Origin: Selaginella moellendorffii | Lineage: Eukaryota > Plantae > Lycopodiophyta | Assembly (NCBI RefSeq): GCF_000143415.4 | Contig: NW_003314350.1 | Span: forward strand, 717,060 to 781,059 | DNA length: 64,000 nt | Reading direction: 5' to 3' | In this document: positions 7,252-43,600 of the stretch, one piece after another | How positions within the stretch are numbered: the stretch's first letter is position 1 | How the letters are laid out: each line of letters begins with the position of its first letter | Notes under the pieces: model-generated | What the model was told of the DNA's origin: nothing | What the model saw: the letters and a program-made list of their open reading frames with translations, nothing else | Databases searched by the model: none | Translations under genes and position numbers: made by a program

Positions 7252-8251
7252 ATGCTGCTCGGGAGTGCGGCAAATGGAAATGGAATCGTCGTCTTCAAAC
7301 AATTCAGGTCTCGTCAGCTGCTGAGCGGCAGGATTTCCAGCTGCAAAATTCCTAGCTCGCATTTCTCGCTGTCTAGGAGTCACTTAATTCGATGCGAGGC
7401 CGCCTCCAACGCAGGTGCTCCACCTTCATATCTTTGATCATCAAAATCTCTCTTGTTCTTATTTTCCGATTTTGCTCCATAGCAGTGTCGAGCGTTCCTG
7501 GTATCGAGTGGGTCCAAAGAACTTTCGATCTCCCACCATATAAAAGGTATGTAAAAAGAAAAATGCGAGGATTCTGATCTTTGCAATCCAGAGGATGTCA
7601 CATAATCACCCAGCAAATCTACAAGGCCGTGCCGGAGATTAGAAACTTTCGAGTCGGCATTGCTCACATCTTTGGTAAGAACTCCAAGAGAATTGAATCG
7701 ACGATGTTTTCTTGCAACTTTTTTGCTCTTGATCGATCTTGTGCGTGATTTGCAGTGATGCACACCTCGGCGAGTCTCACCATCAACGAGAACGCGAGCC
7801 CCGACGTACCACTCGACATGGAGGACGCCTTAAACAAGATCGCTCCAGAGGTAAGGAAAAATTCTCTCCAGAGTTTCCAATCGTTTTTGCTCTCCTTGAA
7901 ATCGTTCTTGAAGGGTCACCACTACCGTCATCTCGATGAAGGACTGGATGATATGCCGGGTGAGTAAACTTGGATGGTCATCTCCCTTGCAAACTTCGCG
8001 CTACGTTTTTTTCTTCTTCCTGTGAAGCTCATGTCAAATCTTCGATCATGGGTTGTTCGTTGAGTGTGCCGATCACCGCTGGGAGATTAAATCTTGGAAT
8101 CTGGCAGGTTGAAAGAGCTAGAGATAGTTTTTTGTCCTCTCCTTGAGTATATCGTGTTGGCTTTTTGTTTTCGCAGGGAGTCTGGCTCAACGAGCATAGA
8201 GACTATGGAGGCAGTCGAAGGCTCTGCATCACAATCCATGGACAATGCTGA
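7252..8251 (+). CDS. YjbQ/UPF0047 family protein with probable plastid transit peptide, multi-exon
   Basis: Spliced peptide WVQRTFDLPPYKRGCHIIT..MHTSASLTINENASPDV..HLDEGLDDMPAHVKSSIMG..LNLGIWQGVWLNEHRDYGGSRR. Confidence 0.9.
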
Positions 8252-8424
8252 GTATAAATACTACGAAGTGAAAAGCTCATACGCAAAAGAAAACCATACC
8301 TGGAAGTTGTATACAAACAACCCGAGTCCGAAGGAAGATTTGGTTCTGCCACCATCTTTCTCTGTGAGATCAAACTCGAAAGTTCTCCGTAAATTCTGAT
8401 CAAACAACAAGATCACAGACTTTC

Positions 8425-9107
8425 CTAGTGTTTCTTATGTGGTTTCTGAATGCCACGCTTGTACCGGGTAATGGACAGCCAGTTCTGGATCTGTAACAAG
8501 AAAGTTCCACACAGGCTTTGCTAGAACGATGCCACTAAAGAAATTTGGAAGTACCTGCTTGACCGTGAGGCCCGTCTGGGCTATGAGCTCCTCTCTCTCG
8601 AGAAGAGATGGATATGGATGATCGGAGTGTTGAGTGATCCAGGACTCGAGAATTTGGACTGATTGACGCGGCAGAGAGTACATGTTCTTGGGCCTCGAAA
8701 GTGGAAGAAGCTTAAACCTGCATGGATCGTCGATTTCTCAAAGAAAAGAATCCAGATTACGCAAAGAAGGTGTTCGCTTACTTGATGAGCTTCCTCGGCT
8801 TCGATCGCCTCGATCTCGCCTTTCGGACGGCCGTGTGCTGCCCCGCCATCGCCAGATAGAAGACTGGATGCTTCTCTTCCGGCTCGAATTCGCAGCTGAT
8901 AGCCGAGCTGTCGGAACAGGCTGCTGGATCGCAATCGGCCTGGCGCTGCTGCTCCTTGCGCCAAAGTATATCGTCGGCTGGCGTCCAGTCGCAATCCGGA
9001 TCAAGAATATCGCCGGCGCCTTCGTCCAGCTCTGGGAGATCGCAAATGTCGCTCAAGACCTGGCTTCCAAACTCCGGAAGCGATTCTTTCCCCGCATTCG
9101 CCTCCAT
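8425..9107 (-). CDS. Divergent TALE homeodomain protein 1 (3 exons)
   Basis: LPRQSVQILESWITQHSDHPYPS..QTGLTVKQ|IQNWLSITRYKR; PYP loop and intron after KQ; GT-AG joins keep the frame. Confidence 0.75.
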
Positions 9108-9339
9108 CGCCCCTGCCAGAGAGCAAATCGAAGTGAGATTGGAGTGAAATATCACATCTGGAGCAGTAGAATCGCAAGATCGATAGAGAAGAGAGCGGCA
9201 TAGTACCCGAGGCGAGAGAGCTCGCGAGGAGAGAACTGGAAGAACCCTACGTAAAGCCTTTGGCCAGAGAAAATTTGAAATGGACGGCGTAGATTCGCTT
9301 ATTTGCGACGAACGGCTGGGGTGGCCTAGATCCGACGGC

Positions 9340-10874
9340 TCAGCTGTGAGCCATTGAGCGGGAAAGCACCTTTGAGTACTTCTGGATGTGGTGCTTGGCT
9401 CTTGCGTTGGACATCCAGCTCTCGATCTAGCAAAAACCACGAAAAAAATCACACCGACCGATCGATCGCGCGAAGAACTTTGTCTGGAGAGAAGAAGTAA
9501 AAGGAAAGATCACGACGTACCTGTTTGGTCTGCAATCCGGTTTGGATCACCAGATCGGTTTTCTCCTCCGCGCTCGGGTATGGATTCTCCCTGTTCGCGT
9601 CGAGCCACATCGCGAGGATCTCCTTGGCTCTGGCAGGAAGCTTTGCGACTGGCCTCTTCCTCTCGTATCCAGTCCGGCGGCGGCGGCGCTTGGGAGAAGC
9701 AATGGGTGGCGAGAGTGGTGGTGACATCTCGGACTCTCGATCGAATTCGTCCCTGGCACGCTTGGAGCTCGCGAATTTTGTGCTGCTTCTCTTCTTCTTG
9801 GGTTCGTGCTCCTGCTGCTGCTCGACTGGTTTGTAGGCCGAGTGGAACTCGGTGGCGGTGTCGCAGCACGATGAACTGTTGTTCACGGAGAGGCTGCAAG
9901 AGTCCACCACTGATTCCGCGAGTAGAGGCGTCGACTGATCCAGCATCGTGTAGTTGTCCTTCGAGAGTAAGCTGAGCTCCACGAACCGATCCAGTCTTGG
10001 GCTTTGAAGTTTCTTCTCGGTTCCATGATATCCAGGCACTGCTGACGATCGAGTGTCGGTCCATGTCCTCTCGCAGTCTAATTCTTCTGCTAGATCTTGT
10101 TCCCGATAGTTTCCTTCTTCCTCATGGATCTCGGTGATCTCCACGCCGGGATGAGCTTGCATGTCGGCATCCTCGTAGAGGATCCCATCCTTCGTCAAGT
10201 TGAGTGCGTAAGACATTGTCGACGACTCCTCTCGCATGACTCCACTCACCAGCGTTGGTTGATCGTATACTGGAAATAGCTGGAAGTCACCGCTACCGTG
10301 ATCGCCACCATGACCTTCCGCCATAGAATCGTTTGGAAAGAGTGGAATCTCGCTGCTCAGAGAAATCTGTGCTTGCTGTGTCTCCAGCGCCTCCGGAATC
10401 CCATCCAGAGCCAGTAGCGGGATCTGCATTTGCCGGAGAACCGCGTGGATCGCTGAGTGATCACACCCCATTCCATCCTGGAACAATCCCCCGTGATCCT
10501 TGATGTTGAGCACGACCTGGATTGTGCTCTGCTCCTCGGTCCTCGCCGTCCAGCCCTGCGCCGCCTGATCGGCCGAAGCGAAGCACGCGGCGGTCGTCTC
10601 CATGAAGATTCCAGTCTCGCCGGCCTCGTTCCAGTAGGACGACTCGCCCTGTTCTTGCTGCGGCGCCGGCGCGGGATCGCGATTCACGAGATCTTGAGCG
10701 TCTTCCTCCGATGTCCAGGAAGCGAACTCGAAATAATCGTCCGCCATGGATACCGCTGCGCAGCACCGGATCGATCACGTAACGATTCAAGCGCAGAGAG
10801 CAAGAATCCGTACCTTGCGCAGCATCGACCGATTCCAGCTCCAGGATCGGCAGCGCTGCGTCGTCCGCCTCCAT
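9340..10874 (-). CDS. Divergent TALE homeodomain protein 2 (3 exons, long acidic N-terminus)
   Basis: KLPARAKEILAMWLDANRENPYPSAEEK..QTGLQTKQ|IESWMSNARAK; an upstream exon MEADDAAL..AAQ splices in frame to the 432-aa ORF. Confidence 0.82.
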
Positions 10875-11509: not shown

Positions 11510-11863
11510 GTGGGCCCCGAACGATTTCCATGTGCGCAATGTGTGTTTCGGTTGAACGAGACCTCCCGCGCTAATGTAAAAGATATAGCGCTGGAAAGAA
11601 GGGCGTTAAAGAAAGGGCCAGGTGGAAGCCCCCAGGAAACTTCTTCCCGTGTGCTACACTGGCGCTGTTATAAACATTAGAGAGGCCCGGCCAAGGAAGC
11701 AATACACGAAGCCGGCCTAGGGTTTTATATTTTGGGGGTTCTTTCTCCGCCTTCCTCGATCGATAGCTAGAACAGGAGCGTTATGGCGGTGATTCTCGCG
11801 AGAATGGAGCTTTGATTCGTTAGAAGAGCGAGAAATCGAGTGGATCGTGCGGGAAATTTCAGG

Positions 11864-13610
11864 ATGTCGAGGGCTAGAACGGATTCCAAGCTCTTTAGAA
11901 GCACCGGGAGCGTAGGAAAGCCAGGGAGGAAACCAGCGGTGGGAGGGTCGCCTGTGGCAGCGGCCGCGGCGTCCTCCATCCCGGTCAAGGAGTCGCCAGA
12001 TTCCAGCCAGCAGGTGGATCCGGATTTGACGAGAGCGCTCAAGCAGATCTTCGAGGTGAGGAACTGCAAGCTCAAAGATCACGGCAGCAGCCACAACAAT
12101 AACAGTAACAGCAGTAGCAAGAACAGTAGCGAGGAATCGTGCCTGACTTTATTTGGGAGGAAGCTGGCCTCGCCGTCGTCCAGTCTGGATGGATCCGACG
12201 GGAACACGAAGAATGTGGCAAATCAGTACTCGCGGCAAGGGACGGACAAGCTTCCTCCTGCTGCCACGGCTCATCTTCTCAAGGAGCTCCACAAGCAAAG
12301 GCTCAAACAAAGGGGTAAGTTTTTCATAGCAGTGAAAAGTATATCTAAACGATTTTTCGGTTTGGATTTCTTAGGAATCACTGCCTCGGCCAACGATTTC
12401 CCAGACATGGGCGAGATTGAGTTCGTCCACACTGAGAGAAGACCGGAAGTGTCGACGCTACCACTTCTCAACAATTTACAGGAGAAGAGACCTCTGGTAA
12501 GTTTTTGTGACTTGGATCGACGAGGAGACGAAGACTCATGGGTTGTTTTTCAGGAAAATGCCTCGGATTGCAGCCCTGAAGCAAAGAGGCAGCGGATCGA
12601 GAAGGATAAAAGCCTGGATCTGAGTCTTTCGGTGGAGTTTGGTTCACCAGATGAAGCAGCTCGAGATTCGAACAATACCCAAAGCATGGACATTGCTGCT
12701 GAGGAGGAGAGGTAAGACTTTTGAGGAAATTTCTTCTTTTTGTTAGGCAGTCGTGACTGAAGCTTGTTTGCTCTCTCAGGACACATGCAACCGTGAAGGA
12801 TCCGGAGCAGCTCACACTCTTCTACAATGGCCAAGTCCTCGTGTACGACGACGTTCCATCCGATAAGGTGGGTTCCTTTGTGCCTTTTGCTATCGTGGAA
12901 CTGTGTATTAACCCTTCGGTTTTTGCTCTTCAGGCTAAAGCGATCATGGTGTTGGCTAGTAGCATCAGCTCAAAGACATCATGCTATACTCCTTGCCTTG
13001 CTGCGGCTACTGCCGCTGCGGCGAAGGCTACCGGTGCTGCTACTGCTCCGCCTATCGTAGTTCCAACCACGGCAAAAGCATCTAACTCGTTGTACCCATC
13101 ACCAAAGGGCACCACTCCAGCGGCAGACAAACGCTCATCGTCAAACGGTAAGCCCGTGCTTTTTGACTCCCACGCATCCGAGCTGACCTCGATCCTCCTC
13201 GCGTTACAGACGTCCAAGCAAGGAAGGCATCCATTAGCAGATTCCTGGTCAAGAGAAAAGACAGGTGTGTATCTCACCACCATCTCGCCAAGACCGAGGA
13301 TCAAACTCGGTGTTTATGTGTGACTTAACTGACGCTTTCTGTTGTGCTTTCCAGGCTGTCTGCCAAGCCAGCCGAGAAGGCCGAGGCGTCGTCAAAGTCG
13401 TCCGCGAAAGACATATCGCAGCGCTCGAGAAGCCCGTCACCGGCAGCGTCGAGCAGTCCCGTGACGCCCCCCAGGGCCTCGCCTCCCAGGCTCGTCGACG
13501 AGCTCAAGCTCCAGCTAGAAAAGGGGGAGATGCTCAAGAGATCCATCCCGGCAAATGCTGGATCAGCAACAGCAGCAGCAGCAGCACCGAGGCAGTGGAT
13601 TGGTGTGTAG
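11864..13610 (+). CDS. JAZ: TIFY/JAZ family repressor (ZIM + Jas, with EAR motif), multi-exon
   Basis: QLTLFYNGQVLVYDDVPSDKAKAIMVLAS (TIFY); spliced Jas DVQARKASISRFLVKRKDR|LSAK with the Jas intron; LDLSL EAR motif. Confidence 0.9.
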
Positions 13611-16600: not shown

Positions 16601-17422
16601 ATTCAATCCTTAAACATTTTCCAAGAACTAGATTGCATCATTCATAGTTCGCTAATCAACGTCATCATCACGCTTCACATCAATGGGAGATAGTAGAACA
16701 CCAAGAAGAGAACAATTATATAATCATGTCTTATGGAAGTTGGAAACAACAACACACTAAGGATAGGTATAATACTAACATGAGCACACCCCACAACACC
16801 AAAAGTTCAATCCAATGGAGTAGCATTAATAACTTCAAGTGATATACTCCTTGATTGATGACTATATGGCATGATAGAAAAAGAGAATGTAATGAAAATC
16901 AAAAGAAAGAGTAGAGATAGCTAAAGTTCTAGATCTTACTATCAGGAATCCCCCAATTCTTGCCACATTCCTGACTCTCGCCGGATTCCTGACCTGCAGA
17001 CCACATTCTTGACTTTCGAGACACTTCCCTATTCCTAACTCTCGAGACACTTCCCTATTCCTGACTCTCGAGACACTTCCCGATTCCTGAGTCTCGAGCC
17101 ACATTCCTGATGATGATGTGGCGCCTCCTTAACCTCAGCTATATTTAGGCCGTCCTCGATCTAAGAGTGGTGGAGCTTCATCAACCTATAATATATATAG
17201 GTTAGCCTTGTTCCATTTCTCCACAATCTGAATCAACACCAGTCTAAGGCCTCTTCTTTGTTTCCACTAGCTTTTCTCTTTGTCTTTAGCATTTTCTAGT
17301 CTTGATCTTGTTGGGGGTCTTGACAGTTTGATTCAGATTGTGGTTTTTGCTTTTCTTTTAGCTCGTTTTGATTATTTGATTGCTTTTGTCTTTTTCCCCC
17401 TTTCTTTTCTTTCTTTTTGCCA

Positions 17423-18394
17423 ATGGAGTCTCCAAGCCATCCTGATTTCTTTGCTGAAGTCCTTGCAAAAATCCAGTCTGAGAATACCGAGCTGAAGGCG
17501 ACCCTTCTTCGCATGCAGCAGGAGCTTGCTTCACTTTTGGCTCAAGGATCCAGCAAAGTTCCTGAACCGAAGGTGAGTTTCCCGGCGAAATTTTCAGGCA
17601 AGCGTTCGGAGCTTCGTGGATTTTTGAACCAAATGGAGCTGATCTTTGCACTTCAACATCGGCAGTACCCCACTCCCGAGTCTCAAATTGGCGCGATTGG
17701 GACATTGCTCGAGGGTGTAGTTTTTTCATGGTTTTCTCCTCTTCTGGAGAAGAGCATGAAAGGGGTCGTGGTTCCGGAGCTGATGGATCTTCAAATGTTC
17801 AAAGAGAAGCTCGAAGCATGTTTTGGCGAGACGGATCGGGTTTGGGCTGCTACCACAAAGATGAGACGTCTCTCTCAGGGGTCTCGTCCTGCCTCGATCT
17901 ACGCTGCAGAGTTCCAACTCCTTGCCTTGGACACTCAGTGGGATGAGTGGGCCCTGATTGACTAATTTCGTTTCGGCCTCAACAATGGTGTCAAGGATTT
18001 GTTGCTCACCATGGAGGATCCCAAGGACCTGTCGGACGCCATCAACAAAGCTGTTCGATGTGACAATCGTCTCTTTGAACGTCGTCAGGAAAGTCGCCGC
18101 GCCGCTGTTTTTCCGTCCCAGACTCAGGAATCCCAGCTTGAGTCTTTGGGGCATAGTCCTGAACCTACTGCTCCGGTCCCGATGGATATTTCTGGTACTC
18201 CCCGACTCATTAGAGGGAAGTTGAGTCCTGCTGAGAGGCAACGTCGAATATCTCATAATCTTTGCCTCTACTGTGCTGATCCTAATCACAAAGCAGCTGT
18301 GTGTCCCAGGAAGCCTCCCCGATTGCTTGAGTTCACTCTGCCTCAAAGTCCACCTCTGTTGCAGTCGGGAAACGACCCTGTCCAAACAGAGTAG
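17423..18394 (+). pseudogene. gag: Retrotransposon gag with CCHC zinc knuckle and one internal stop
   Basis: PAKFSGKRSELRGFLNQ..; CLYCADPNHKAAVC; TAA at 17963. Confidence 0.9.
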
Positions 18395-21300
18395 GAGCTG
18401 TCTGTTTGGACTCCCCAAATAAAAATCACTTTTCTTCCTTATCAAGCTCCTCACCACCTTTCATCAAAGCCACCACCAATTCCCGCAACTTCTGCGTCCC
18501 ATGTCTCCTTTCTTTCACCGGACAATCAGGACTCAAGGCTTTGGCGCTACTGGACTCGGGTGCAACTTCTTGCTTCATGGACACGGACTTTGCTGCCCGA
18601 CATCACGTTCCTCTTTCTCCTACCATACGGGATTTGAGGGTTGAAGGCATCGGCGGGCATTTTGTGTCTCCATCTTCTGGACTTAGGGAAACGTTGCCCA
18701 TTCGAGTACACATTCGGTCCACTGTCACCGATATCGCCTTCAACATCATCAACAGCAAGTCCTCCTCTGTGGTGCTCGGTCTTCCTTGTTTCCAACTACA
18801 TCAGCCTCAGATCTGTTGGAAGGAATTACAGCTCATCTCTCCCACGGCTTCCCCTGCTATTCATCGAGTCCGAATCAGGAAAAGTTCCCTAAACTCGAAT
18901 CAGGGTTCTATTCCTGACTCTATAAAGTTTTCACCCTCTTCTTTTTCCTCTCTTCCATCTTACACTGGACCATATCCTCGTCTCATCATTCCATTTAGTC
19001 GTACACCTCCTCCTATCTCCACAATCACTATGAAAGAACTCCTTCATGAAGAACCTCTTTTTTTTTTTGCTTTGCATGTTTCTCCTGTCAGTCTTCCTGA
19101 GAAGTATCATGATTTTGGGGATGTGTTTGACAAGAAAAAAGCTAGTGTACTGCCTGTTCATTGGCCTTATGATTGTCCCATTGATTTACAGGAAGGAGCG
19201 TCACCTCCGTGGGGGCCTATCTACGGGTTATCCCTGTTTGAGCTTAAGGCCCTCAAAGAGTACGTGGATGAGAACCTTGCCTCAGGCTACATTCAGCATT
19301 CGCAGTCCCCGGCTGGAGCGCCTGTCTTCTTTGTCAAGAAGAAGGATGGGAGCTTGCGACTAGTCATCGACTACCGAGGTTTGAACAAGGTGACTGTTCG
19401 GAACCGTTATCCGCTGCCCCTGATCTCGCACCTGTTGGAACGCCTCGGCGGTGCCCGCTTCTTCACCAAGATCGACCTCCGTGGAGCATACAACCTGATT
19501 CGGATCCGGCCTGGTGATGAATGGAAGACTGCGTTTTGAACCCGCTATGGCCACTTCGAGTACACTGTCATGCCATTTGGCTTGACAAATGCTCCAACAG
19601 TTTTCCAACACATGGCGAATGACGTCTTTCGGGAGTTTCTTGATCAGATGGTGATCGTCTACCTCGATGACATCCTCATCTACTCAAAAACTCAGGAGGA
19701 GCATGACGAACATGTACGCAAGGTGCTCGCGAAGCTGCGAGAACACGGCCTTTACGCGAAGCTTGAGAAATGTTCCTTTGATCAGCAGTCTGTGGAGTTC
19801 CTTGGGTACATTGTCACTCCTGAAGGTATCACGATGGATCCTGCCAAAGTCAAGACTATTCTCGAATGGGAGCCTCCACAATCAATGTCAGATGTTCAGG
19901 TTTTCCTTGGCTTCGCCAACTTCTACTGCAAATTCATTGATCACTACTCTGACATTGTCCTTCCTCTCACACATCTCACTCGCAAGGATGTTCCCTTCTC
20001 TTGGTCTGCTGCTGCCTAGCAGGCTTTCGACACACTCAAGGCGGCCTTCAGTTCTGCTCCTGTCTTGATCCATGCTGATTCCTCACAACCTTTCTTCATC
20101 GAGGCTAATGCCTCCGACTTTGCCATTGGTGCTGTGCTGTCTCAACTCAGAGCGGATCACGAACTTCATCCGGTCGCTTTCCATTCTTGGAAGTTCCAGC
20201 CTACGGAGATCAATTACGAAATCCACGACAAGGAGCTCCTTGCCATCGTGGATTCCTTTGGAGAGTGGCGCTGTTTCTTGGAGGGGGCGAGCCATCAAAC
20301 AACAGTCTGGACGGATCACAAAAATCTTGAGTACTTTGCCACTTCCCGAGTTTTAAGCCGTCGTCAAGCAAGGTGGGCACAATTCCTGAATCGGTTTGAC
20401 TTTGTTATCAAGTACAGACCTGGAAAGTTTCAAGGCCTTCCTGATGCTCTTTCAAGGCGCTCCTATCTCAGTCTCAGGCCTGGTAATCCTGCCTTCGATC
20501 AACAAGATCAAGTTATCCTCGGTCCTGATCGGCTTCAAGTTATGGCAATTTCCCTGGCCCCTCAGGACTCCTCCTTGATGGATGCAATCAGAAACGATCT
20601 TCAATCTGATGATCTCGCTAGCGACATTTTCCCCCATCTTCAGGCTGGACACCCAGTGACTCCCGATTGCCGGCGATTTGACGAGTTCGAGTTCTTAGAT
20701 GGCTTATTGTACCGTGGGGAGCAGCTTTACGTTCCTGAAGGTGATGCTCGAAGGTTGGTCCTGATGGCGTGCTACGATAGCCCGACTGCTGGTCACTTTG
20801 GCATTGCGAAAACCTATGAGCTAGTTGCACGGGACTTTTGGTGGCCTCACATGGACGACTACATCAAAGCTTTTGTTACCTCCTGTGACACTTGTGCCCA
20901 GAATAAGGTACCTCGCCACCTTCCTTTAGGTTTGCTTCGTTCCCTTCCGGTCCCTTCAGGTCCTTGGGAATCCATCTCCATGGATTTCTTGAGTGATCTT
21001 CCGAGTTCTTGAGGCTTCAACAACATTTTAGTCGTGGTGGATCGCTTCACAAAGATGGCGCACTTCTTGCCATGTACCAAGGAGTTTTCGGGCGAGGATA
21101 TGGCAAAACTGGTATTCAGGGAAATTTTCCGACTTCATGGGATTCCTACAGATGTGGTTTCGGATTGAGGGCCTCAGTTCATCTCTCATTTCTGGCAACG
21201 GTTTTTGCAGCTGCTTGGAGTGAAGGCCAACCTCTCTTCGGCATATCATCCTCAAACTGATGGGCAGTCCGAGCGAACGATTCAGACGTTGGAACAATTC

Positions 21301-22125
21301 TTGAGGTGCTTCATCAACTATCATCAGGATAACTGGTTCGATATCCTTCCCCTTGCTGAGTTCTCCTATAACAACTCTGTTCACTCCTCTCTTCGAGTTT
21401 CCCCCTTCTTTGCGAACTCTGGCCGAAATCCCCGATTCAATCTCTCACTTCCTTCTCCATCTGAATCCTCTCGTTCAAATCCCCGCTCTGAATCATTTAT
21501 CTCCAACCTCCAAGAAATCCACAACTCCATCTCCTTCCACCTCCATCATGCTCAGGAATCTCATAAAACATTTGCCAATGTCCATCATCAGGATTGTCCC
21601 CCTTACAATATCGGGGATAAAGTCTGGCTCCTCAGGCGAAATATCTCCACCACCAGGCCCTGTCCAAAACTCGATTTCAAACGCCTTGGTCCTTTCCCTA
21701 TCACTGCCATCATTAATCCTGTCACTTATCGCCTTGCACTTCCCTCCTCATATCAAATTCACCCCATTTTTCACTCCTCTCTCCTTGAGCCTTATATTCC
21801 CAGTCCTATTCCAAATCGGGTCATTCCTCCGCCTCCACCAGTGCAGCTCGAGGATGGGTCTGAGTACGAGGTTCAGGACATCCTTGATTCCAAGATTTCA
21901 CGGTCTAAACTCTACTATCTGGTGAACTGGAAGGGTTACGGACCTGAGGAACGCACTTGGGAACCTGTGGACAACCTGATTCATTCTCCTGACCTTGTTC
22001 AGGACTTCCACCGCCGCTATCCTTCTCATCCCAGTCCTCATTCTTTTTCTCCATCTCCCATCCCTCGCCACTCATCTCATCCTCCTCTTCGTTCTCGTTC
22101 ACATCCTCGTTCCACTCGTTCTTGA
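18367..22125 (+). pseudogene. pol: Retrotransposon pol (PR, RT, RNase H, integrase, chromodomain) with four in-frame stops
   Basis: LLDSGAT, YLDD, ASDFAIGAVL, HPQTDGQSER, EYEVQDILDS..YLVNWKGYGPEERTWEP; stops near 19537, 20017, 21010 and 21166. Confidence 0.93.
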
Positions 22126-23631
22126 GGAGGGGGTGCTGTTAGGAATCCCCCAATTCTTGCCACATTCCTGACTCTCGCCGGATTCCTAACCTGCAAACCA
22201 CATTCCTGACTCTCGAGACACTTCCCTATTCCTAACTCTCGAGACACTTCCCTATTCCTGACTCTCGAGACACTTCCCGATTCCTGAGTCTTGGATGTGG
22301 CGCCTCCTCAACCTCAGCTATATTTAGGCCGTCCTCGATCCAAGAGTGGTGGAGCTTCATCAACCTATAGTATATATAGGTTAGCCTTGTTCCATTTCTC
22401 CACAATCTGAATCAACACCAGTCTAAGGCCTCTTCTTTGTTTCCACTAGCTTTTCTCTTTGTCTTTAGCATTTTCTAGTCTTGATCTTGTTGGGGGTCTT
22501 GACACTTACAAAAAACTATTATATATTTAGATCTGAAAAAGAATGAAGAAATAAAAACAAAAAACACAATCTCGAACACTAGAGCAAAACACTACAAAAA
22601 AACTTTGCCTTTTAGGGACAAATTGCAATGCCCCTCAACTCCACAACTATGAGTGCTCAAGATATAAGAATAGGCATATTAATTGTGGTTTAGATCCTTG
22701 AATAAATGGATTATATTCAGTCCTAAATTGATGGTCCATATGCTATAGTACTATAATTAGTGTATTACTTAATTAGAGTAATACATATACATACATATGT
22801 ATATTTACAAACCTTACAGATTCAAGTATAAAATATTATAAATTGGTGATATTGTGTTGCTTTACTATTTCATGTAAAATAAAAAGAGGTAATAACACAA
22901 ATATATCTTTTTAATTATGCCTGCACTATATTTTGTTACCTTTATAATAATTACAACCATCTAAAAATAAAAAGTGTTATGAATATCAAATTACAAATTT
23001 AAATAGTTACAATTTAAGTTCCTAATTTTGACCAAGCTTTAATTTTATTGTTTTCTCTCTAAAGGCTTTATATATAATATGCAACCTAAAAAATATCATT
23101 ATTTCAAATTTTTATTATGTGGTATACCACATCATATATAATTAAATATATTACTTGCTTTAAAGAGTAAGTTAAAGGTTATATATATACTTGTTAACTG
23201 CGATACCATATTTGTGCTTAACTTAAAATATATATATTTGCACAAGAAAAAAATATTAAATGACAATAATTAAAATTTCAAAAAATAAAAATGATTTATA
23301 AAATTTAAAATTTAAAATAAAATTTTAAATATTCTATTAAAGTATTTTTAAGAAGAAAAAACTAATTTTAACACTACTCTAAATTTGTATGTTGTTACTC
23401 CTAACAAAATAATCTTTATTATTTCAATTTGTGTGTTTGTAGTTATTCTTAACTTTTAATTTTCTTGCATTAAATGGAAAATTTTTAAGTAAATATATTT
23501 TCCTTATTTTTAAAAAGTTAAACAAAATTAAATTTTAAATCATGTTAAAAACTTTACCCTAACAAACTGAACTTTATGGACGAGTGAGTCCAGTAAAAAA
23601 TGTGGCTTACCCTTGTCTTGTCCTCTCACAG

Positions 23632-24085: not shown

Positions 24086-26330
24086 ATGAGAAGGCTGGCC
24101 AGAGGACTCGCTACAGACTGTGCAAGCAAACAGCTAAACTTGAGAGAGTACCTCGATTCGAAGCTATGCTCCTCCGATGTCTCCACTCTGGCTCGTCTCA
24201 TCCGCGAGTGTGGTTCTCTGGAAAGCCTGCTAGATGCACAAAAGATTCACAGTCACATTGTAGAGTCTAGCTTTCAGGAAAGCTTTTACCTGCGTGAGCG
24301 CCTCGTCCACATGTACCTCAAGTGTGGCAGTGTCGAGAACGCCGAGGACGTCTTCTTGGACAGGAACAGGATGGCTCACTTCCGAGACGTCACGACGTGG
24401 ACGGCGATGTTGTCCGCATACTCTCGTCAATCCAGCAGCACCACCAAGGTGCTCGAGTTCTACTGCCAGATGCTCCAGCACGGTGTCAAGCCCGACAGCT
24501 TCACTTTCACTGCCGTGTTGAAAGCCTGTGTTTCTGCGAGGAGAGCGTTGAGTGGCGGCAAGGCGATCCACTCCCAGATCTTAGAGAGCGGGCTAGAGGA
24601 CGACGAGATCATCGGAACTTCGGTCGTGAGCATGTATGGGAAGTGCAGCAGCCTGGTTGATGCTCGAGCCTGGTTTGATGGAGTTTGTGTCCGACGTCCG
24701 CATGGAGTGGTGTTGTGGAACGCCATGATCTCGGCTTACGTCCAGAGCGGCTGCTGTGGACAGTCCTTGGAGCTCTTCACGCTGATGCTCTTGGAAGGTG
24801 TCGCTCCAAACAGTGTCACGTATGTCACGGTTCTCAATGCTTGCAGCTCTACATTGACGCTGGGTATTGGCACGGCGGTTCACATCTGTGTTTGCGATCT
24901 CGGCCTCGAGTCGGACGTCCTCCTTGAGCAGGAAGAGCGGGAAGCTGGACGAAGCCCGGAAGATCTTTGAAAGGATCGAAGCTCCGGACTTGGTGTCGTG
25001 GAACTCGATGATATCAGCTCTTGGCCAAGGTGACAGTGCTCGGACGTTGTTCAAGCAGCTACTTCTGGAAGGCCTCGCTCCAAATGCGATCACTCTCATC
25101 TCTACTATCAATGCCTGTGCTTGTCCGGAAGATTTGACGGAAGGAAAGCTGATCCACGCCTGCAGCTATGAAAGTGGCCGGGCGTCGGTACTCTTCATGA
25201 GGAATGCTCTTGTAGACATGTATGGAAAATGCGGCTGTCTAGAGAAAGCTCGCGAACTGTTTGAGTCTAAAACAGTGGAGAGGAACTTAGTCAGTTGGAG
25301 TGTCATGGTTGCGGCTTACGCAGAAAACGGTCATGGTCACGAGGCCCTGCAGCTCTTCAGGATGATGATTCTGGAGGGTCAAAGCCTCGACTCAGTCGTC
25401 TTTGTCAACGTCCTCAATGCTTGTTCTTCGGTAGGAAACGCTGCTGCGGGAGAAGCTCTTCACGGCAACTTAGTTGAGGCTGGATTCGAGTCGGACTTAG
25501 TAGCGGCAACGGCACTCGCCAACATGTATATCAAGTGTGGACGTTTGGAAGACGGGCGACGTGTTTTCAACAGAATGGAGGTCCGAAACGTTGTCAGCTG
25601 GAACACCATGATCTCGGGCTATGCTCAGAACGGTCGTCCCAAAAAAGGCTTGGAACTCTTCCACCAAATGGATCCCGGAGTTGCTGACAAGCGGACGTAT
25701 GTAGCAGCACTGGATGCTTGCGCCTGGTCAGTGGCTGCAACCGAAGGGAAACTTATACACCAGCAAATACTTCAGCAGAAGATGAGTGTCGACGTAATCC
25801 TGGGAACAGCCATTGTCAACATGTATGGAAAATGTGGTTGCTTGAGCGAAGCCCGGAAGTTCTTTGATAGTATACCTCTTCCCGACGTCGTCACTTGCAA
25901 TGCCATGATAGCTGGTTATGCTCAGCACGATCACCTCGGCAAAGCTCTTGGTCTGTTCGCCAAAATGAAGCAGGAGGGAGTGAGACCCGATGGTGCCACC
26001 TTTGTTAGTGTTCTGTGTGCTTGTAGCCAGTAACTTGAAAAAAGGATCCGAGTTCTTCATATCAATGCTGGTCGATTATGAGTTTAAGATTTCTGTTGAG
26101 CACTGTGGTTGCATGCTGGATCAGCCGGTCAGGAATGCTGCGTGAAGCGGAGGATCTCCTAAAAAAGTATCTGACTTCAGCCAGAGACACCAAGTGGATA
26201 ACGTTGCTGGCCGCGTCTAAGACTGAGAGTGATGCAACCGTGGCTCAAAACGCAGCAGAGGGCCTTATGAACTGCCGCCCAAGAGCTCTTTCCCATACGT
26301 CGTGCTTTCCACTGCTTTGAGCACTGATGA
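24086..26330 (+). pseudogene. PLS-class PPR pseudogene
   Basis: PPR repeats split by a frameshift near 24925, a stop at 26031 and further frameshifts in the E region. Confidence 0.85.
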
Positions 26331-36519: not shown

Positions 36520-37790
36520 GGTAGGAGGTGCTGGAAAAACACTCCTGACAATGACCGCATTTCGATCCAGTTTTGTGGCTAACCATTCCTAAGATTATCA
36601 CAACTGCATGCAACATGGTTTGTATTTCCTCAGATGGAACCAAAGCAACACGAGCTTGCCAAACTAATCAGACTAGAAGGTCGGACCAGCAATGAAACGG
36701 TGCTTGCAGGGAAAAGGTGCTTGCTGGTGTTGGATAATGTCTGGAAATCCGGTCTGTTTGGTGTGGTGCAAGAGAATGGAAGCAAGATCTTTATTACCAG
36801 TCGAAAAACTGATGTGCTTGGCAGCAGAGGTGCAATCAAAACAGAGATGGGGCTCTTGGCAAAAGTTGTTCATAGTCCACGCATTCCCAAACCAAAAACT
36901 TGCTAGTTCAAGTAAGGTCATAGTCCCAATCTTGTGTGCCTGCCATTCTTCTGCCAATTACCTTCAGGAGCAGTGGAAGCCCCCCACACTTCACTCCACT
37001 ACTTTCTAAGCAAACTGTAAAAATCTGGCTTGTTAAGTCGCCTTGGACGTCGCACTTGAACGTCATGCACTTATCACTGAAGAAAAAGAGCTCTTCCTTT
37101 ACACACCCTGGAACAAATGCCCCTTGGAAGTGTTACCTCAAGGCTGAAAGGTCTCATACCAGGGAATGCCTTCAGTAACTACAACAAGATTTCACTCGAT
37201 GGGTGTAGAATTTCTGAAAATACCCTGCAGAACAAGGTCAGAGTTTCAAGCACCACGTGCTTGCTCTTGGATTATAGTCCCCATTGCACTCTAACTACAT
37301 TACGGTTTTGTGCCTAAGTAACACTGGGGTGGTAAGTTTGCCACGTAGCATTAGAGAGCTCAAAACTCTAAAGACTATGGATTTGACTTGGAACATAATA
37401 CTCCAATTTTCGAATGTTTCCCATGCTGACATTGTCAAACCTCTCCCTTGGGAATTGTGAAAAATTGATTGGGGTTCCTTGAAATCTCCTCTTCTTCTGC
37501 ATCTTGTTCGTTCCAAATCTAAAGACAATTTGCATAGGTTACTGTGACGGTGTGACCACCCTCAACATATACGAGTGCATTAGGGACGTGTTGAAGTCGT
37601 GAATTTTAGTTCAGTGGTAAGTTCCCCTTAAACAAACATTGCGTTATTCACCAGCTTCCAAAATGGTACACATCATTCACGAGCTCTGGAATTGAGTTAT
37701 CCAAAACTTTCCTTCAGTTGACTCCCCGTATGTTTGACTGTTTGTTGAACTTTGAAAATGTTTTCATGTCTAAAAGATTTGGAATATTGG
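36520..37790 (+). pseudogene. Heavily deleted NLR relic, paralog of 31043-34171, with an internal inversion
   Basis: ggaggtgctggaaaaacactcctg, LAGKRCLLVLDNVW, GSKIFITSRK; about 36917-37006 is the reverse complement of about 32145-32240. Confidence 0.88.
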
Positions 37791-37804
37791 CGCCACATCT
37801 CAGA

Positions 37805-39292
37805 CTAACGAAGCTTGGGAACAACGGGAAGTCCATCTTTCATGATCAGCGTCATGTTGATACCGTAGCAAGGCTCTTCTTTTCCCACCACCACAAGCTC
37901 AAACTTTGGTACCAGAGCCGCCACCACATACTTCATCTGTAGCATGGCCATCTCTTTGCCCAGACACACTCTCGGCCCGGCCTGAAACACCGGAAACTTG
38001 AATGGACTCACCTCGACGAACTGGCCATCCTGGATCCATCTCTCGGGCTTAAACTCGAGGCAGTCCTTCCCCCACAAGCTCTCCATCCTTCCCATAGCGT
38101 AGACGTGATACGATACCTTCATCCCCTTCTCCACACAATTACCATCCGGGAGAACGTCCGAGTTCTTCACGACCTTTGTGTCAATCGGTACTGGGGGATA
38201 GAGCCTCATTGATTCGCACAGAGCTGCTTGCAAGTAGACCATGTCCCGAAGCTCCTTGTAAGTGAATGGCCTGTTTGACCCTTTCGCGACTATACTCCCG
38301 ACTTCCCTGATGATTTCCTGCTGAACGCCTGGATGATTCGAGAGCAGCCAGAAGAACCACGAGAGTGACACCGCTGTTGTGTCCTTGCCGGCGAGCACGA
38401 AACTTATGATGATATCCCGCAAAAACTCGTCAGAGAAGCTCGTCGAGTCGAGTCCAATGAACCTCGAGAGCAAGTCCTGGTTGACCCTTCCTTTTTCTTC
38501 TCGCCGCTTCTGGACCACTGACACTGCAAACTCGTTCACCACATCCAGCACCTCCTTGAGTTCTCTTTCCGGTCCAACGTTGAGAGCTCGCATTAATTTC
38601 CACACCAGAGGATGGATCTTTTGGAAGCGCAGCGTGCTAAGCGTCGTTGCCTTGTCAAATGCCTGCGCGAACTTCACCTCCGGAAACGATGGATCCAAGC
38701 ACGCCGGATCAACACCGAAAGAGAGCTTGCAAATGTTGTCGAAGTTAAACCTCATGAACAAGTCCTGTAAGTCGATCTCCTTCCCATCCCGGGAAACACT
38801 GGCAAGAGTTGGCAGTAACCGGCTGTGAACTTCGTCCGCCAGGGAATCCATGAGGAACTCCCTCAGTGACCTCGTTGTGAACTCGAAGCTCGCAAGTTTC
38901 CTCTGAATCTTCCACAGCTCCCCGTCGACATTGAAAATACCATCTCCCAGCAAGTCGGTCAGGCTCTGCCTCAGGTGTTCTCCCTTGGGATAATTCTCGA
39001 AGTTGGTCTTCAAGATGTGCTCCACAGTTGCGGGATTGCCAGTGATTTTGAAAGTGCTGCCAAACCTCCCAGTGGTGAAAGTATTGGAGGGAGAGTTGAT
39101 CACATACTCTGTCGACCACTCGAGAAACCTGTGGCTGTTGCGAAGGAAGTCGAATACATTCCCAACGACTGGATAAAGTACTGGACCGCCTGTTCGTTGC
39201 GAGTCGGCTCTTGATTGAATCGTCCTCCGGACTATCCAGCCCACCGCTGCCGCAAGAACAAAGCTCAAGCTCCACAACATACCTTGGTTCAT
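37805..39292 (-). CDS. CYP94: Cytochrome P450, CYP86 clan, CYP94 family, intronless
   Basis: 495 aa; HILKTNFENYPKG, DLLGDGIFNVDG, AGKDT, ESMR, PERW, FQAGPRVCLG. Confidence 0.9.
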   Translation of the reverse strand: MNQGMLWSLSFVLAAAVGWIVRRTIQSRADSQRTGGPVLYPVVGNVFDFLRNSHRFLEWSTEYVINSPSNTFTTGRFGSTFKITGNPATVEHILKTNFENYPKGEHLRQSLTDLLGDGIFNVDGELWKIQRKLASFEFTTRSLREFLMDSLADEVHSRLLPTLASVSRDGKEIDLQDLFMRFNFDNICKLSFGVDPACLDPSFPEVKFAQAFDKATTLSTLRFQKIHPLVWKLMRALNVGPERELKEVLDVVNEFAVSVVQKRREEKGRVNQDLLSRFIGLDSTSFSDEFLRDIIISFVLAGKDTTAVSLSWFFWLLSNHPGVQQEIIREVGSIVAKGSNRPFTYKELRDMVYLQAALCESMRLYPPVPIDTKVVKNSDVLPDGNCVEKGMKVSYHVYAMGRMESLWGKDCLEFKPERWIQDGQFVEVSPFKFPVFQAGPRVCLGKEMAMLQMKYVVAALVPKFELVVVGKEEPCYGINMTLIMKDGLPVVPKLR

Positions 39293-39584
39293 GCTGAAAG
39301 CCCAGAAAAGGAGTGACGCATGTCAGTCGCCCTGACCAGTTGAAAACCCAAGTCACAAGGAAGAAACGCCAGCCAAAGAAAAAGATTCGAAGAAGCTACC
39401 TTGCCATACGATAAGAGACACGACAGTCATTTGAGACGGTGATAGAGGCTCGTACCAGTGGATCTGAAAGTCACCAAGTCAAGTCATTACAAAAGAAATC
39501 TAGATTTCTAGTACCTTGCTGAAGTTTGGAATGACCCATGTATTCTGTTGAGACCGCTCTTCTATTTCCTCCACCCGAAATTCA

Positions 39585-39900
39585 ATTTTGGTACCGGAGT
39601 TGCTTCATCGTCTTGACTCTCGGCTCAGCCAGAAACTTGAATGGACTCGCACTGATCCATCTCTCGGCCTTAAACTCGAGGCATTTCTTATCTTCTCCAT
39701 CCGGACGACTGTAGTATCATATGGGAGGATACAGCCTCACAAAGCTGCTTGCGAGTAGAGCTCGTCGTAAGAGAATTTACCTTCGCCAGTATACTCTGAT
39801 AATTTCTCACGGGTTGAAAGCACCCAGAAGAACCAGGAGCAGTTGTGTCCTTCCCGGCCAGCAAGAACTGATGACGATTAACTCGATTTTTGTCAGAGGT
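39585..39900 (-). pseudogene. Degenerate CYP94 tandem remnant
   Basis: Patchy match to 37905-38435 (gaaacttgaatggactc, gatccatctctcgg.cttaaactcgaggca, ccagaagaacca) with many microdeletions. Confidence 0.7.
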
Positions 39901-39969
39901 TCTATGTTCTATTTACTGAAAGAGGAAGTCGTTCAAATCAAGGAGTGAATTCTTAGAAACCGGAGTTGC

Positions 39970-41167
39970 TTACGTATGGTCAGGCTTCATGAACTTTGCG
40001 TGAACCCAGACTCGCTTCATAGGAACTTTAGTTTTGTGATTCACCAGCTTAATGCAGCAGTACTCCAGTTCAATCTGGAAAAAGAACAGACAGAATAATA
40101 ATAACAAGGAAACAAGCATCGTTTTACCTCGAGCAATCCAGCACCCGTAAAGAGATCACGCACGGCTTCGCACGAGAAGAAATACGACAAAGTACCATCG
40201 AGACGGCGATAGCAATTAGCAGCTACTTTTTGGTCTGCTGGAAATCTCAACATCGTCATGTCATACAAGCCTGTAGGCTTGCCACCGTGAGTCTTACTAT
40301 TTCACGGAGAAATAGCATACCATAATCTCGAAAGAGAAGCATTCCACCGGGTCGGAGTACAGAGCAACATTCTTTGAGAAGGTTGCTCATTTGATCCAGA
40401 TCTGCCAGCGCGGAAAGAGCGAAAATCTGAAAAGACAAATCAGTTTTAATTGCAAGACAATGTCAGGCTTACCAGCGTGATGAAATCTGCTCCTCCTTCG
40501 CAGCAGCTTACAAGGGAGCTCTTGATACCAAAGTCGGAGGCTCGACAGGCGTCACAAGCCAGCCACGCCGGAAGTGCCTCACAGGAAGGATCGCAAACAA
40601 AAGTCCGCAGCCTCGATTTTGCTTGCTCATTCAAAGCTTTCTCTCCCATCTTGTTTGTGAGGCTCACGGCAGCCTCACTGAGGTCGCAAGCATACACTCT
40701 AGCGGTTGTTGTTGCTCTAGAACAAAATACGTCCTTCAGTAAGAGGGAATAGCAAACAACATCAAACCTCAGGATCGGAATGGCCGAACTTCCAGCTCCA
40801 CATCCAACCTCCAGAACAGTGAAGTCTTGATTAGATCTTCCAAGCTCAGGGAACTCTTTGAGAAGATACCTACGCTCCTGCAATGTGGAAAGCCCGTAAG
40901 GCAACAGTGCAGTGCTGATGCTTACTTTAAAGAAGATGCCTTGAGAGTGTCGGCTGTGAAACTTCTCCCATGCCAAGGCTGCAGTACAGGCATGCTCGCT
41001 AGAAATCATCTTCTCTTCTACGCGAGCCAAATCCTAGTCAAAGAGAACAAGCCATTGATCAGTAAAAGGAAACAATATAATGTAAGCCCAACTTGTGCGC
41101 TCTCCACCTCTTCGCGCAGATCATTCCAATCAAAATCCTTGGAGTAGTACGCGACTTCTTCTTCCAT
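39970..41167 (-). CDS. METTL6: METTL6/Trm140-like tRNA m3C methyltransferase, multi-exon
   Basis: WEKFHSRHSQGIFFK|ERRYLLKEFPEL, LEVGCGAG, IFALSA, LRPGGMLLFRDYG, YRRLDGTLSYFF, MKRVWVHAKF. Confidence 0.88.
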
Positions 41168-41240
41168 GAGACCTAAAACGAGAGGCCAAATAAGAGTTGA
41201 ATTCAACCGTTAGTTAATGTTACAAAAAATATAGTTTTAG

Positions 41241-42889
41241 TCAATCGCTCCAATTGTCCTCGTCGGCTTGCACTTGAGCCGCAATAGTTCCAAGAGCTTC
41301 GTCCTGAAAGAAAAAATCGCATCCATATCTCCTGTTTTTCACCACAAAGATGCTGCGCTCACCTCGGAAACCGACTGCTTTGGAGACCAGACGAGTATTC
41401 TACGATCATTGCTTCCACTGTAGAGTTCCTGGGAGAAAAAAAAGCATAGCTTCTCGAGGAAACAGAGAGACGATATAATACCTGTGATTGACTGTGATAA
41501 GCACAGCAGTTTACAAGTTCATAGTGTCCTTTTAAGGTGGAAAGCAAGCGACCGCTCAACATATCGTACACCTTTCAAGTGAAAATAGAGAATTATTCCG
41601 AATAGGATAGGATACGTCGTACCTGTATCGAGGTTAGACATGGAACGAACACCAGTGGCTTGTCTCCAGAGACCTCAAGTTCGCACGTCAGATTTCCGTT
41701 TATGTTTGTTGCCTCGTAATTCACAAGAGTATTGCAGCCCCTTTCTATGTCCCATAGCTTGACTCTGGAATCACTGCCTGGCGCATTGTGTTCTTAAAAG
41801 TAAAGAAACAAAACAAACGAAGCCGTACCCGCACTAAGAAGGTAGTGTCCGTCGCGGCTTGTCTGGAGCGATGTCACTGTGCCATAGTGCGCCGTGGAAC
41901 GGTCCAGAGCCGAAGTCAAGCCTGGATGAACTCGTCCAGGAGTGGCATCCTTGGAAGTTTTCGCTGCTCTACTGATTTCAGTGGCTTCAAAAAAATAGAC
42001 AAAACAAAAGAGAACGAGAGGGAAACTATTACCTTCCTGAGAAGCAGAAGAACGATGCTGGTCAAGAACATAGAAGCAACCCGCACGTCTTATGTCCCAC
42101 AACCGGATCGCACCGTCACAACCTCCGGAAATTAAAATCCATTCGGAAGATGCAGACCATTTCACCGCCCAAACAGCATCTGCAAGTACAGGAAAGGTTT
42201 TGCAGGGACAAACACAATCTCGAATACCTCGGTGAGCGCTAAGGGTGTGGGTGAAAGCACCAGAAGATATATCGCAAAGCCTTATGCGATAGTCCTCCGT
42301 GCCTGTAGCTATAAGCATGTGAGTCGTAGAAACGGGTGACATGCTTACACCGAAAACCTTCCCTGGCATTTTGAATTGCATCAGCACCTACAAAAGAACG
42401 ATTCAGTGAATCAGAAACCAACAAAGAAAAGGTCTCCAACCTCGAGAGTGTTTGCATCCCAAACATTTATATGCTTGTCGAACGAGCCAGAGATAAAAAT
42501 TCCAGTGTCCACTGGATACCATCGAACTGATGAAACGGAGTACCTATGGGCTTTGTCAATAGAAAAGAGGGCTTCGTGCTTTTGAGAGTAAGGCTCCACC
42601 GTCGTTGGCTGTGATATGTCATAGACACTGATCGATCCATTTCCATTGCCAGCAAGCATATATCTAGCTTCCACGGGATCAATCTAGCACAAGATTTACA
42701 CAATAATTTTCAAACTGAAAATGAAAGAACCGATCCAAATACCTGCAAGCTGTTCACAGCGCCTCTGCCAGACGAAATCACATCCTTGGTCTTGCACAGC
42801 TCCAATGCGCGAGATCTCATCCGGCGAACAGAAGCAGCGTAGCGCCATGGCGGTGCCCCGAGCTCGCGCTCTCGAATACCACTCCACAT
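41241..42889 (-). CDS. CSA: WD40 protein CSA/ERCC8 (transcription-coupled NER, CUL4-DDB1 receptor)
   Basis: VEARYMLAG, HRYSVSSVRWYPVDTGIFISGSFD, HMLIATGTED, GCDGAIRLWDIRRAG, C-terminal DNWSD*. Confidence 0.92.
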
Positions 42890-43013
42890 TGGCGCCACAC
42901 CATAAACCCTAAAAGAAATTACGTGTTTTAAGACTTTTAAATTACAAATATAAAAAACGTTCCACGTGGCACAGTACCTGCCAGGTGGTATTCTGCGTGG
43001 TCCTGACGTGGCA

Positions 43014-43600
43014 CTATTGCAAGGTCTTGACGTAGTGATCCAATGCCATGTTAAACAATTCGCATCTGGAAGAACGATTGAGACGACCACAAGAGCGAGG
43101 GAGAAGAGATTTGGATCGACCTGAAAGGCTGGCCGGGAGAGTAGAGAGGATTCTTCACGACGTACTCGACGTAGATGTTGCTATAGATGTGCATCAAAGC
43201 CTCGCGGAGATCTCCAATCCTGGGATCTGTCAAGAGAATGATCTGCGAGAAGAAGACAAACTAAGCCTGGAGCTACAAGCGCGCATTACCTTGATCCCAG
43301 ACGCCGTCTCCATGAAATGTAGCTTGTAAGTGTTCGTCCGGAAGCTATAGAAGGAGCACGGCGGATTGTTCTCCTTCCCGGAGCTGAAAATCACCAAATT
43401 TTCACCAGATCTAGCGAGAATCCCCCTCACCTCACTGGATCGATCTTGGCCGTGAAGGAATTGAGCGAGAAGAGCATTCCAAACATGAGCTTTTGATCCT
43501 GCTGGGGACTCAGCGTCATCAGCGATCGCAGCCAGACGTGGTAGTGCAAGCACATGCCATTCCTGTTGAAAATGTAGAGGCATCGCATCCTCGGGGCCAT
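43014..43600 (-). CDS. BET5: TRAPP complex subunit TRAPPC1/BET5
   Basis: LYIFNRNGMCLHY..KLMFGMLFSL..FRTNTYKLHFMETASGIK..IYVEYVVKNPL. Confidence 0.92.

Follow-up and report, generated by a model that had tools for sequence, protein, structure and literature searches.

Two adjacent, strongly diverged TALE homeobox genes without recognisable KNOX or BELL partner domains in Selaginella moellendorffii

The 64,000-nucleotide stretch of the Selaginella moellendorffii genome analysed here (hereafter the window; positions 717,060 to 781,059 of the forward strand of contig NW_003314350.1, RefSeq assembly GCF_000143415.4) carries two minus-strand genes for TALE homeodomain proteins, arranged head to tail between positions 8425 and 10874, as counted from the first letter of the window. 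The outer coordinates correspond to the proposed start codon of the upstream gene, named gene 2 (10874), and to the stop codon of the downstream gene, named gene 1 (8425). The coding sequence of gene 2 adds up to 1383 nucleotides (nt), that is, 460 amino acids (aa) plus the stop codon, with an alternative start at ATG 10747 that would yield 437 aa; that of gene 1 adds up to 555 nt, for 184 aa plus the stop codon (Table 1). An earlier note on this DNA, made from the letters alone, had described two same-strand genes about 230 bp apart, each with a PYP loop and an intron after Lys-Gln. This arrangement was borne out, since the stop codon of gene 2 (9340) and the ATG of gene 1 (9107) are separated by a spacer of 232 bp, and the translations and splice sites agree with the loop and the intron in each gene. 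With a slash for the intron, the homeodomain reads ...PYPS...TGLQTKQ / IESWMSNAR... in gene 2 and ...HPYPS...TGLTVKQ / IQNWLSITR... in gene 1.

The large open frame of gene 2 runs for about 432-433 codons, a length with a chance of about 4e-8 at the local base composition. Its guanine-plus-cytosine (GC) content at codon positions 1, 2 and 3 was 0.60/0.44/0.67, a pattern seen in every 100-codon block, and the first exon of gene 1 gave 0.63/0.47/0.70; the PPR and cytochrome P450 genes of the window, taken as reference, gave about 0.53-0.60, 0.37-0.41 and 0.65-0.66, respectively. The coding-type pattern was absent from the remaining frames and from the spacer of the pair, and all four introns were of the GT..AG type, with lengths of 58-94 nt. 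The possibility that the plus strand or another frame of this region is coding was considered and rejected, because the open reading frames (ORFs) found there had no Pfam family and the composition was coding-like only in the proposed frames. Given the open frames, the canonical splice sites and the codon-position composition, both units look like genuine coding genes, or like genes that were so until very recently.

Table 1. Proposed exons, introns and spacer of the two TALE homeobox genes (positions in the window)
Feature	Positions	Strand	Description
Gene 2 proposed exon 1	10814-10874	-	ATG at 10874; 20 codons plus 1 nt; phase-1 donor; model only
Gene 2 proposed intron 1	10756-10813	-	58 nt, GT..AG; joins exons 1 and 2 in frame
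Gene 2 exon 2	9521-10755	-	Acidic N-terminal region, basic stretch and homeodomain positions 1-44 (about 9521-9661)
Gene 2 homeodomain intron at 44/45	9427-9520	-	94 nt, GTACGT..TAG; phase 0
Gene 2 exon 3	9340-9426	-	Helix 3 (IESWMSNARAKHHIQK...) and stop codon; from translation
Spacer, gene 2 stop to gene 1 ATG	9108-9339	-	232 bp; open in the frame of gene 1; composition not coding-like
Gene 1 exon 1	8782-9107	-	ATG at 9107; acidic N-terminal region, no Pfam family
Gene 1 intron 1	8718-8781	-	64 nt, GTAAGC..CAG; model
Gene 1 exon 2	8555-8717	-	Homeodomain positions 1-44 with HPYP loop
Gene 1 homeodomain intron at 44/45	8491-8554	-	64 nt, GTACTT..CAG; phase 0
Gene 1 exon 3	8425-8490	-	Helix 3 (IQNWLSITRYKRGIQK...), Ile at position 51, stop codon

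Pfam searches, structure predictions, similarity searches and scores were all run exon by exon. The Homeobox_KN family was recovered from single exons of both genes, with E-values of 1.6e-8 for gene 2 (residues 381-409) and 1.3e-8 for gene 1. Hidden Markov models (HMMs) of the N-terminal part of the homeodomain (N-part, positions 4-44) and of the helix-3 part were built from 84 TALE homeodomains of the large HMMER search described below. A six-frame scan of the 64-kb window with these models detected exactly two TALE N-parts (E-values of 1e-16 and 4e-16), which are those of this pair, and the top helix-3 matches in the window were the two proposed last exons (3e-4 for gene 2 and 0.05 for gene 1), each located one short intron downstream of its own N-part. 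The homeodomain exon of gene 1 also aligned, free of gaps, to the PKNOX1, MEIS, TGIF and PBX homeodomains in the PDB (1.5e-7 to 1e-3); PDB searches with the short helix-3 exons of both genes returned no match. At the four core residues of the homeodomain (Leu16, Trp48, Asn51 and Arg53) gene 2 has all four and gene 1 three, the latter with Ile at position 51, and position 50 is Ser in both genes. The TALE homeodomain signal in both genes is far beyond chance. Translation of the two last exons also upheld the description of helix 3 as WMSNAR and WLSITR, with Ser50 and a departure from the WFIN motif, as well as the statement that gene 1 lacks Asn51 and has only about 180 aa.

The absence of visible KNOX and BELL partner domains, another observation of the earlier note, was confirmed by two kinds of search: KNOX1, KNOX2, ELK and POX (SKY/BELL) had no Pfam match at E<=1 on any exon of either gene, and a motif scan found no ZIBEL, SKY or ELK motif, the last of these in all six frames. 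The N-terminal regions of the two proteins are acidic (isoelectric points of 4.35 for gene 2 and 4.58 for gene 1), with no Pfam family and no informative look-alike in the ESM Atlas. Single-sequence AlphaFold models of these regions, which are weak evidence, had predicted confidence scores (pLDDT) of 41 and 51, and in exon 2 of gene 2 AlphaFold2 reached a pLDDT of at least 70 only for helices 1 and 2 of the homeodomain.

In green plants, an intron at 44/45 is found in the non-KNOX group (BELL, GLX and PBX-like genes), an intron at 48(2/3) in the KNOX/MEIS group, and an intron at 24(2/3) is specific to canonical plant BELL genes (Joo et al. 2018, PMC6219170); Mukherjee et al. 2009 (PMC2775110) agrees on the intron positions by class. 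Both genes of the window have the intron between Gln44 and Ile45, in phase 0, when counted back from Trp48. Descent of the pair from KNOX genes was rejected, because the intron lies at 44/45 and not at 48(2/3), and because KNOX1, KNOX2 and ELK are missing. On account of the shared 44/45 intron, in a place other than 48(2/3), the pair is best read as very diverged non-KNOX (BELL-related) TALE genes, within the known TALE framework.

Canonical land-plant BELL (BEL1-like) proteins resemble the pair in their TALE homeodomain and 44/45 intron, and gene 2 in the Asn-Ala-Arg core of helix 3; in contrast, they have the SKY/BELL (POX) and ZIBEL elements, the 24(2/3) intron and Ile50, none of which is present in the pair, where position 50 is Ser. 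Helix 1 of gene 1 follows the pattern LP..SV..L..W...H..HPYP, which we take to be that of BELL proteins. The KNOX class shares with the pair the TALE homeodomain, the PYPS loop and the Lys-Gln-Ile junction before helix 3, whereas it differs by its KNOX1, KNOX2 and ELK domains, by its 48(2/3) intron and by a helix 3 that reads WFINQRKRHW. The algal-type non-KNOX TALEs (GLX, Class-B and MpBELL2-5) are, by their description, similar to the pair in having no recognisable PBC/BELL domain and in not being nested in the canonical BELL clade; Class-B, Mam-A/B and MpBELL2-5 have no discernible PBL domain (PMC6219170; bioRxiv 2020.04.06.027821). Some of these proteins have a function in gametes, and those of the algae retain KNOX binding. 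MpBELL2-4 differ from the pair in carrying two or three homeodomains in one protein. Our literature search found no paper linking Selaginella with GLX-type TALEs, and no lycophyte member was named in the papers on algal-type TALEs.

Relatives of gene 2 were sought with an exhaustive HMMER search of 1.84 billion representative proteins, in which its large exon was the query and the cut-off was E<=0.001. A total of 41 matches were obtained, all of them through the homeodomain end of the query, and residues 1-270 had no relatives. Every one of the 41 proteins carried Homeobox_KN and none carried KNOX1, KNOX2, ELK or POX; their sources, where known, were a diatom, a choanoflagellate, a chlorarachniophyte, fungi, a giant virus and environmental contigs. 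No plant protein was among the 41 matches to gene 2 at this cut-off, and its homeodomain is accordingly not near that of any plant KNOX or BELL protein. The homeodomain of gene 1 scores 26 bits against gene 2 and would fall outside the matches of a gene 2 query. Word-indexed protein searches with the large exon of gene 2, or with its homeodomain part alone, returned no match, too few exact words being held in common. Exact-sequence look-ups of the 432-aa ORF, of the neighbouring PPR gene (with three alternative starts) and of the P450 gene found no record.

Many of the HMMER matches were proteins with two to five tandem TALE homeodomains. The top scores to the N-part of gene 2 came from such multi-homeodomain TALEs of environmental or protist origin (P0012, P0018, P0001 and others, from diatom-like or unassigned contigs), whose helix 3 also resembles that of the Selaginella genes, with IESWM... 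followed by Lys-Arg-Gly-Val-Gln-Lys. The exon-3 peptides of both genes, which were not part of the HMMER query, were in both cases most similar to P0012 and P0018, two environmental proteins with two homeodomains each (scores 44-48); this likeness rests on about 16 residues and may reflect convergence. Unlike the pair, these TALEs are intronless, have two to five tandem homeodomains, belong to unrelated lineages and have Glu50-Lys51 in place of Ser50. Many of them, like gene 1, have no Asn51. As side observations on this set of matches, P0001, P0012, P0013, P0018 and P0025 (loci L001 and L002) have two to three tandem TALE homeodomains with Lys, Ser or Thr at position 51, the contig of P0002 has two adjacent TALE ORFs 64 nt apart, and P0034 is a giant-virus (Harvfovirus) protein with two TALE homeodomains.

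A recent tandem duplication as the origin of the two genes was rejected, as their homeodomain N-parts are only 38% identical and their N-terminal regions are unrelated. The exon-3 peptides of the pair scored 41 against each other, compared with medians of 15-20 over the 84 foreign TALE homeodomains. Both genes have Ser50, Met or Leu at position 49, Lys55, an Ile-Gln-Lys tail (positions 58-60), the PYPS loop and the intron at 44/45, and these common features suggest an old tandem duplication, which would be the simplest reading.

The TALE genes of this species had been catalogued before. In an exhaustive search of S. moellendorffii, Mukherjee, Brocchieri and Burglin 2009 (PMC2775110) reported six "uncharacterized" TALE genes (six according to their Table 2, five in the text) besides two BEL genes, five KNOX genes and one pseudogene. 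The uncharacterized genes could not be grouped with confidence with either KNOX or BEL, and the usual co-domain architecture was missing from them. Both genes of the window fit this definition, being S. moellendorffii TALE homeodomain genes with no KNOX or BEL co-domain, and it is likely that both loci are among the six catalogued genes. The main text of that study differs from the present description in that it is silent on a tandem arrangement, on Ser50 and on the loss of Asn51. The earlier note had proposed a lineage-specific class of TALE genes; such a class would not be new, given that genes of this kind were already listed in 2009 (PMC2775110), and the 44/45 intron is of the BELL/PBC type. 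The pair is a further, or an already listed, member of the known co-domain-less TALE group of S. moellendorffii.

The reading that we favour, and consider probable with some reserve, is that of two separate and intact non-KNOX (BELL/PBC-type) TALE genes with neither SKY/BELL nor MEINOX domains, most likely belonging to the six uncharacterized genes of 2009. Several observations weigh against it. Gene 1 has lost the near-invariant Asn51, and its helix 3 reaches only 11 bits against the TALE HMM. The 24(2/3) intron of canonical BELL genes is absent, positions 1-44 being encoded in a single exon in both genes, and since the 44/45 intron is regarded as ancestral, it is a stronger argument against a KNOX ancestry than for an origin from canonical BELL genes. 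Finally, gene 2 had no match to itself, or to a near copy of itself, in the public protein sets. Because the S. moellendorffii proteome is part of the collection that was searched, gene 2 appears to be unannotated in the public sets included there, which is consistent with little or no expression in the tissues on which the annotation was based.

Both genes could be silent or nearly silent relics, that is, old duplicates of the BELL lineage that lost the partner domain and later their function with the frames still open, and the absence of gene 2 from all the protein sets searched, in spite of the inclusion of the proteome of the species, is in line with such a history, as are the lack of relatives outside the homeodomain, the N-terminal regions predicted to be unstructured, and the missing Asn51 and weak helix-3 score of gene 1. 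We nevertheless consider relics rather unlikely, in view of the 433-codon open frame with its very small chance of occurrence, the intact splice sites of all four introns and the coding composition in every block of gene 2; moreover, the homeodomains are far from canonical TALE sequences, so their frames have been maintained for a long period, a point in favour of selection. The earlier note had suggested a DNA-binding factor plus a weakly binding partner or inhibitor, reminiscent of heterodimeric life-cycle TALE pairs; in such a functional pair the members would act with each other, or each with a KNOX protein, in gametes or zygotes, in the manner of KNOX/BELL or GSP1/GSM1, with gene 1 as a weak partner or an inhibitor. 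The two genes are indeed adjacent and on the same strand, with one homeodomain that looks competent and another that looks impaired, and expression restricted to gametes would explain why gene 2 was not annotated; however, their adjacency is equally explained by tandem duplication, and no interaction domain was detectable in either of them. Non-KNOX TALEs of green algae that have no PBC-like domain still heterodimerise with KNOX proteins, whereas two non-KNOX TALEs did not interact with each other in the algal assays (PMC6219170). In Marchantia, male organs express four of the five BELL-related genes, which are "algal-like" and have no discernible partner domain, and MpBELL2-4 act in zygote activation (bioRxiv 2020.04.06.027821). 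On balance a functional pair of this sort appears improbable, and a heterodimer or inhibitor role for these two genes is speculation.

A broader version of this idea, according to which the ancient algal-type non-KNOX TALEs would have survived in a lycophyte in the form of this pair, expressed only in gametes or zygotes and acting in the haploid-diploid switch, either with KNOX proteins or as a competent/impaired pair, is in our opinion just as doubtful; in land plants the algal-type non-KNOX TALEs have so far been reported only from liverworts, namely MpBELL2-5. The separation into two genes was also weighed against a single gene with two homeodomains, in which an additional intron would remove the stop codon of gene 2, as in MpBELL2-4 and in the multi-homeodomain TALEs of many protists. 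The spacer is short, the gene 1 frame has no stop codon in the 115 codons that precede its ATG, and an in-frame intron of 64 nt (the length of both gene 1 introns) could be delimited by the GT at 9379 and the AG in front of 9315. These features, like the tandem homeodomains of many of the best matches, are compatible with this structure. In contrast, the candidate donor is weak, the spacer read in the frame of gene 1 has codon-position GC contents of 0.53/0.58/0.45, as compared with about 0.60/0.44/0.67 in the exons, gene 1 has an ATG of its own followed by coding-like sequence, and about 200 residues would separate the two homeodomains, whereas those of multi-homeodomain proteins are adjacent. 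A single gene is considered very unlikely, and two separate non-KNOX TALE genes remain our preferred interpretation.

Homeodomain positions 50, 51 and 55 are known to take part in base contact. The acidic and probably disordered N-terminal region of gene 2, its stretch rich in Arg and Lys, and its Trp48, Asn51 and Arg53 residues suggest that its product is probably a nuclear, sequence-specific DNA-binding factor, whose preference for flanking bases would differ from those of KNOX and BELL proteins owing to Ser instead of Ile at position 50 and Lys instead of Arg at position 55. With Ile51, gene 1 would presumably encode a weak or non-specific DNA binder; it may modulate other factors, or the gene may be in the course of being lost. 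The nuclear role, the DNA specificity and any interaction of the two proteins are thus predictions from their sequences.

The pair is located in gene-dense DNA. The window also has genes for E-motif PPR proteins, a P450 and an NB-ARC/LRR protein as well as a chromovirus, a combination that marks it as land-plant DNA. Next to gene 1, a multi-exon UPF0047 (YjbQ-like) gene on the plus strand (7300-8252) lies tail-to-tail with it, with about 170 bp between the stop codons, and on the other side a plus-strand TIFY-domain gene (11840-13600) lies head-to-head with gene 2, the two having about 960 bp of upstream DNA in common. Farther away, a chromovirus-type long terminal repeat retrotransposon (17400-22130, plus strand) encodes protease, reverse transcriptase, RNase H, integrase and chromodomain, its coding region being broken into several ORFs, and a plus-strand PPR gene (24086-26033) consists of two overlapping ORFs in different frames, which point to a frameshift or a short intron. 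The product of the intronless P450 gene at 37.8-39.3 kb matched "cytochrome P450 94A2 [Selaginella moellendorffii]" with 99% identity along its entire length, the next-best match being 58% identical, which confirms the species. At the DNA level, the P450 block of the window (37498-43019) showed about 92% identity over 5.5 kb with GL377570.1 (L003, 6508-11816), the NCBI scaffold that carries this protein, and was not collinear with it beyond that block, so the window holds a different copy, either a segmental duplicate or a strongly diverged haplotype.

Pairs of TALE homeodomain proteins control the haploid-to-diploid switch in green algae, liverworts and mosses, and to our knowledge none of the six spikemoss TALE genes outside KNOX and BELL has been studied. 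These six make up about half of the 13 TALE genes in the 2009 catalogue of the species. Whatever the state of the two genes described here, the larger one, gene 2, appears to be missing from public protein sets. Should both be silent, they would be one more set of drifting duplicates. If they are expressed in gametes or zygotes, the pair would provide a natural example of a homeodomain without Asn51, and a lycophyte entry point to the remodelling of the TALE switch in vascular plants.

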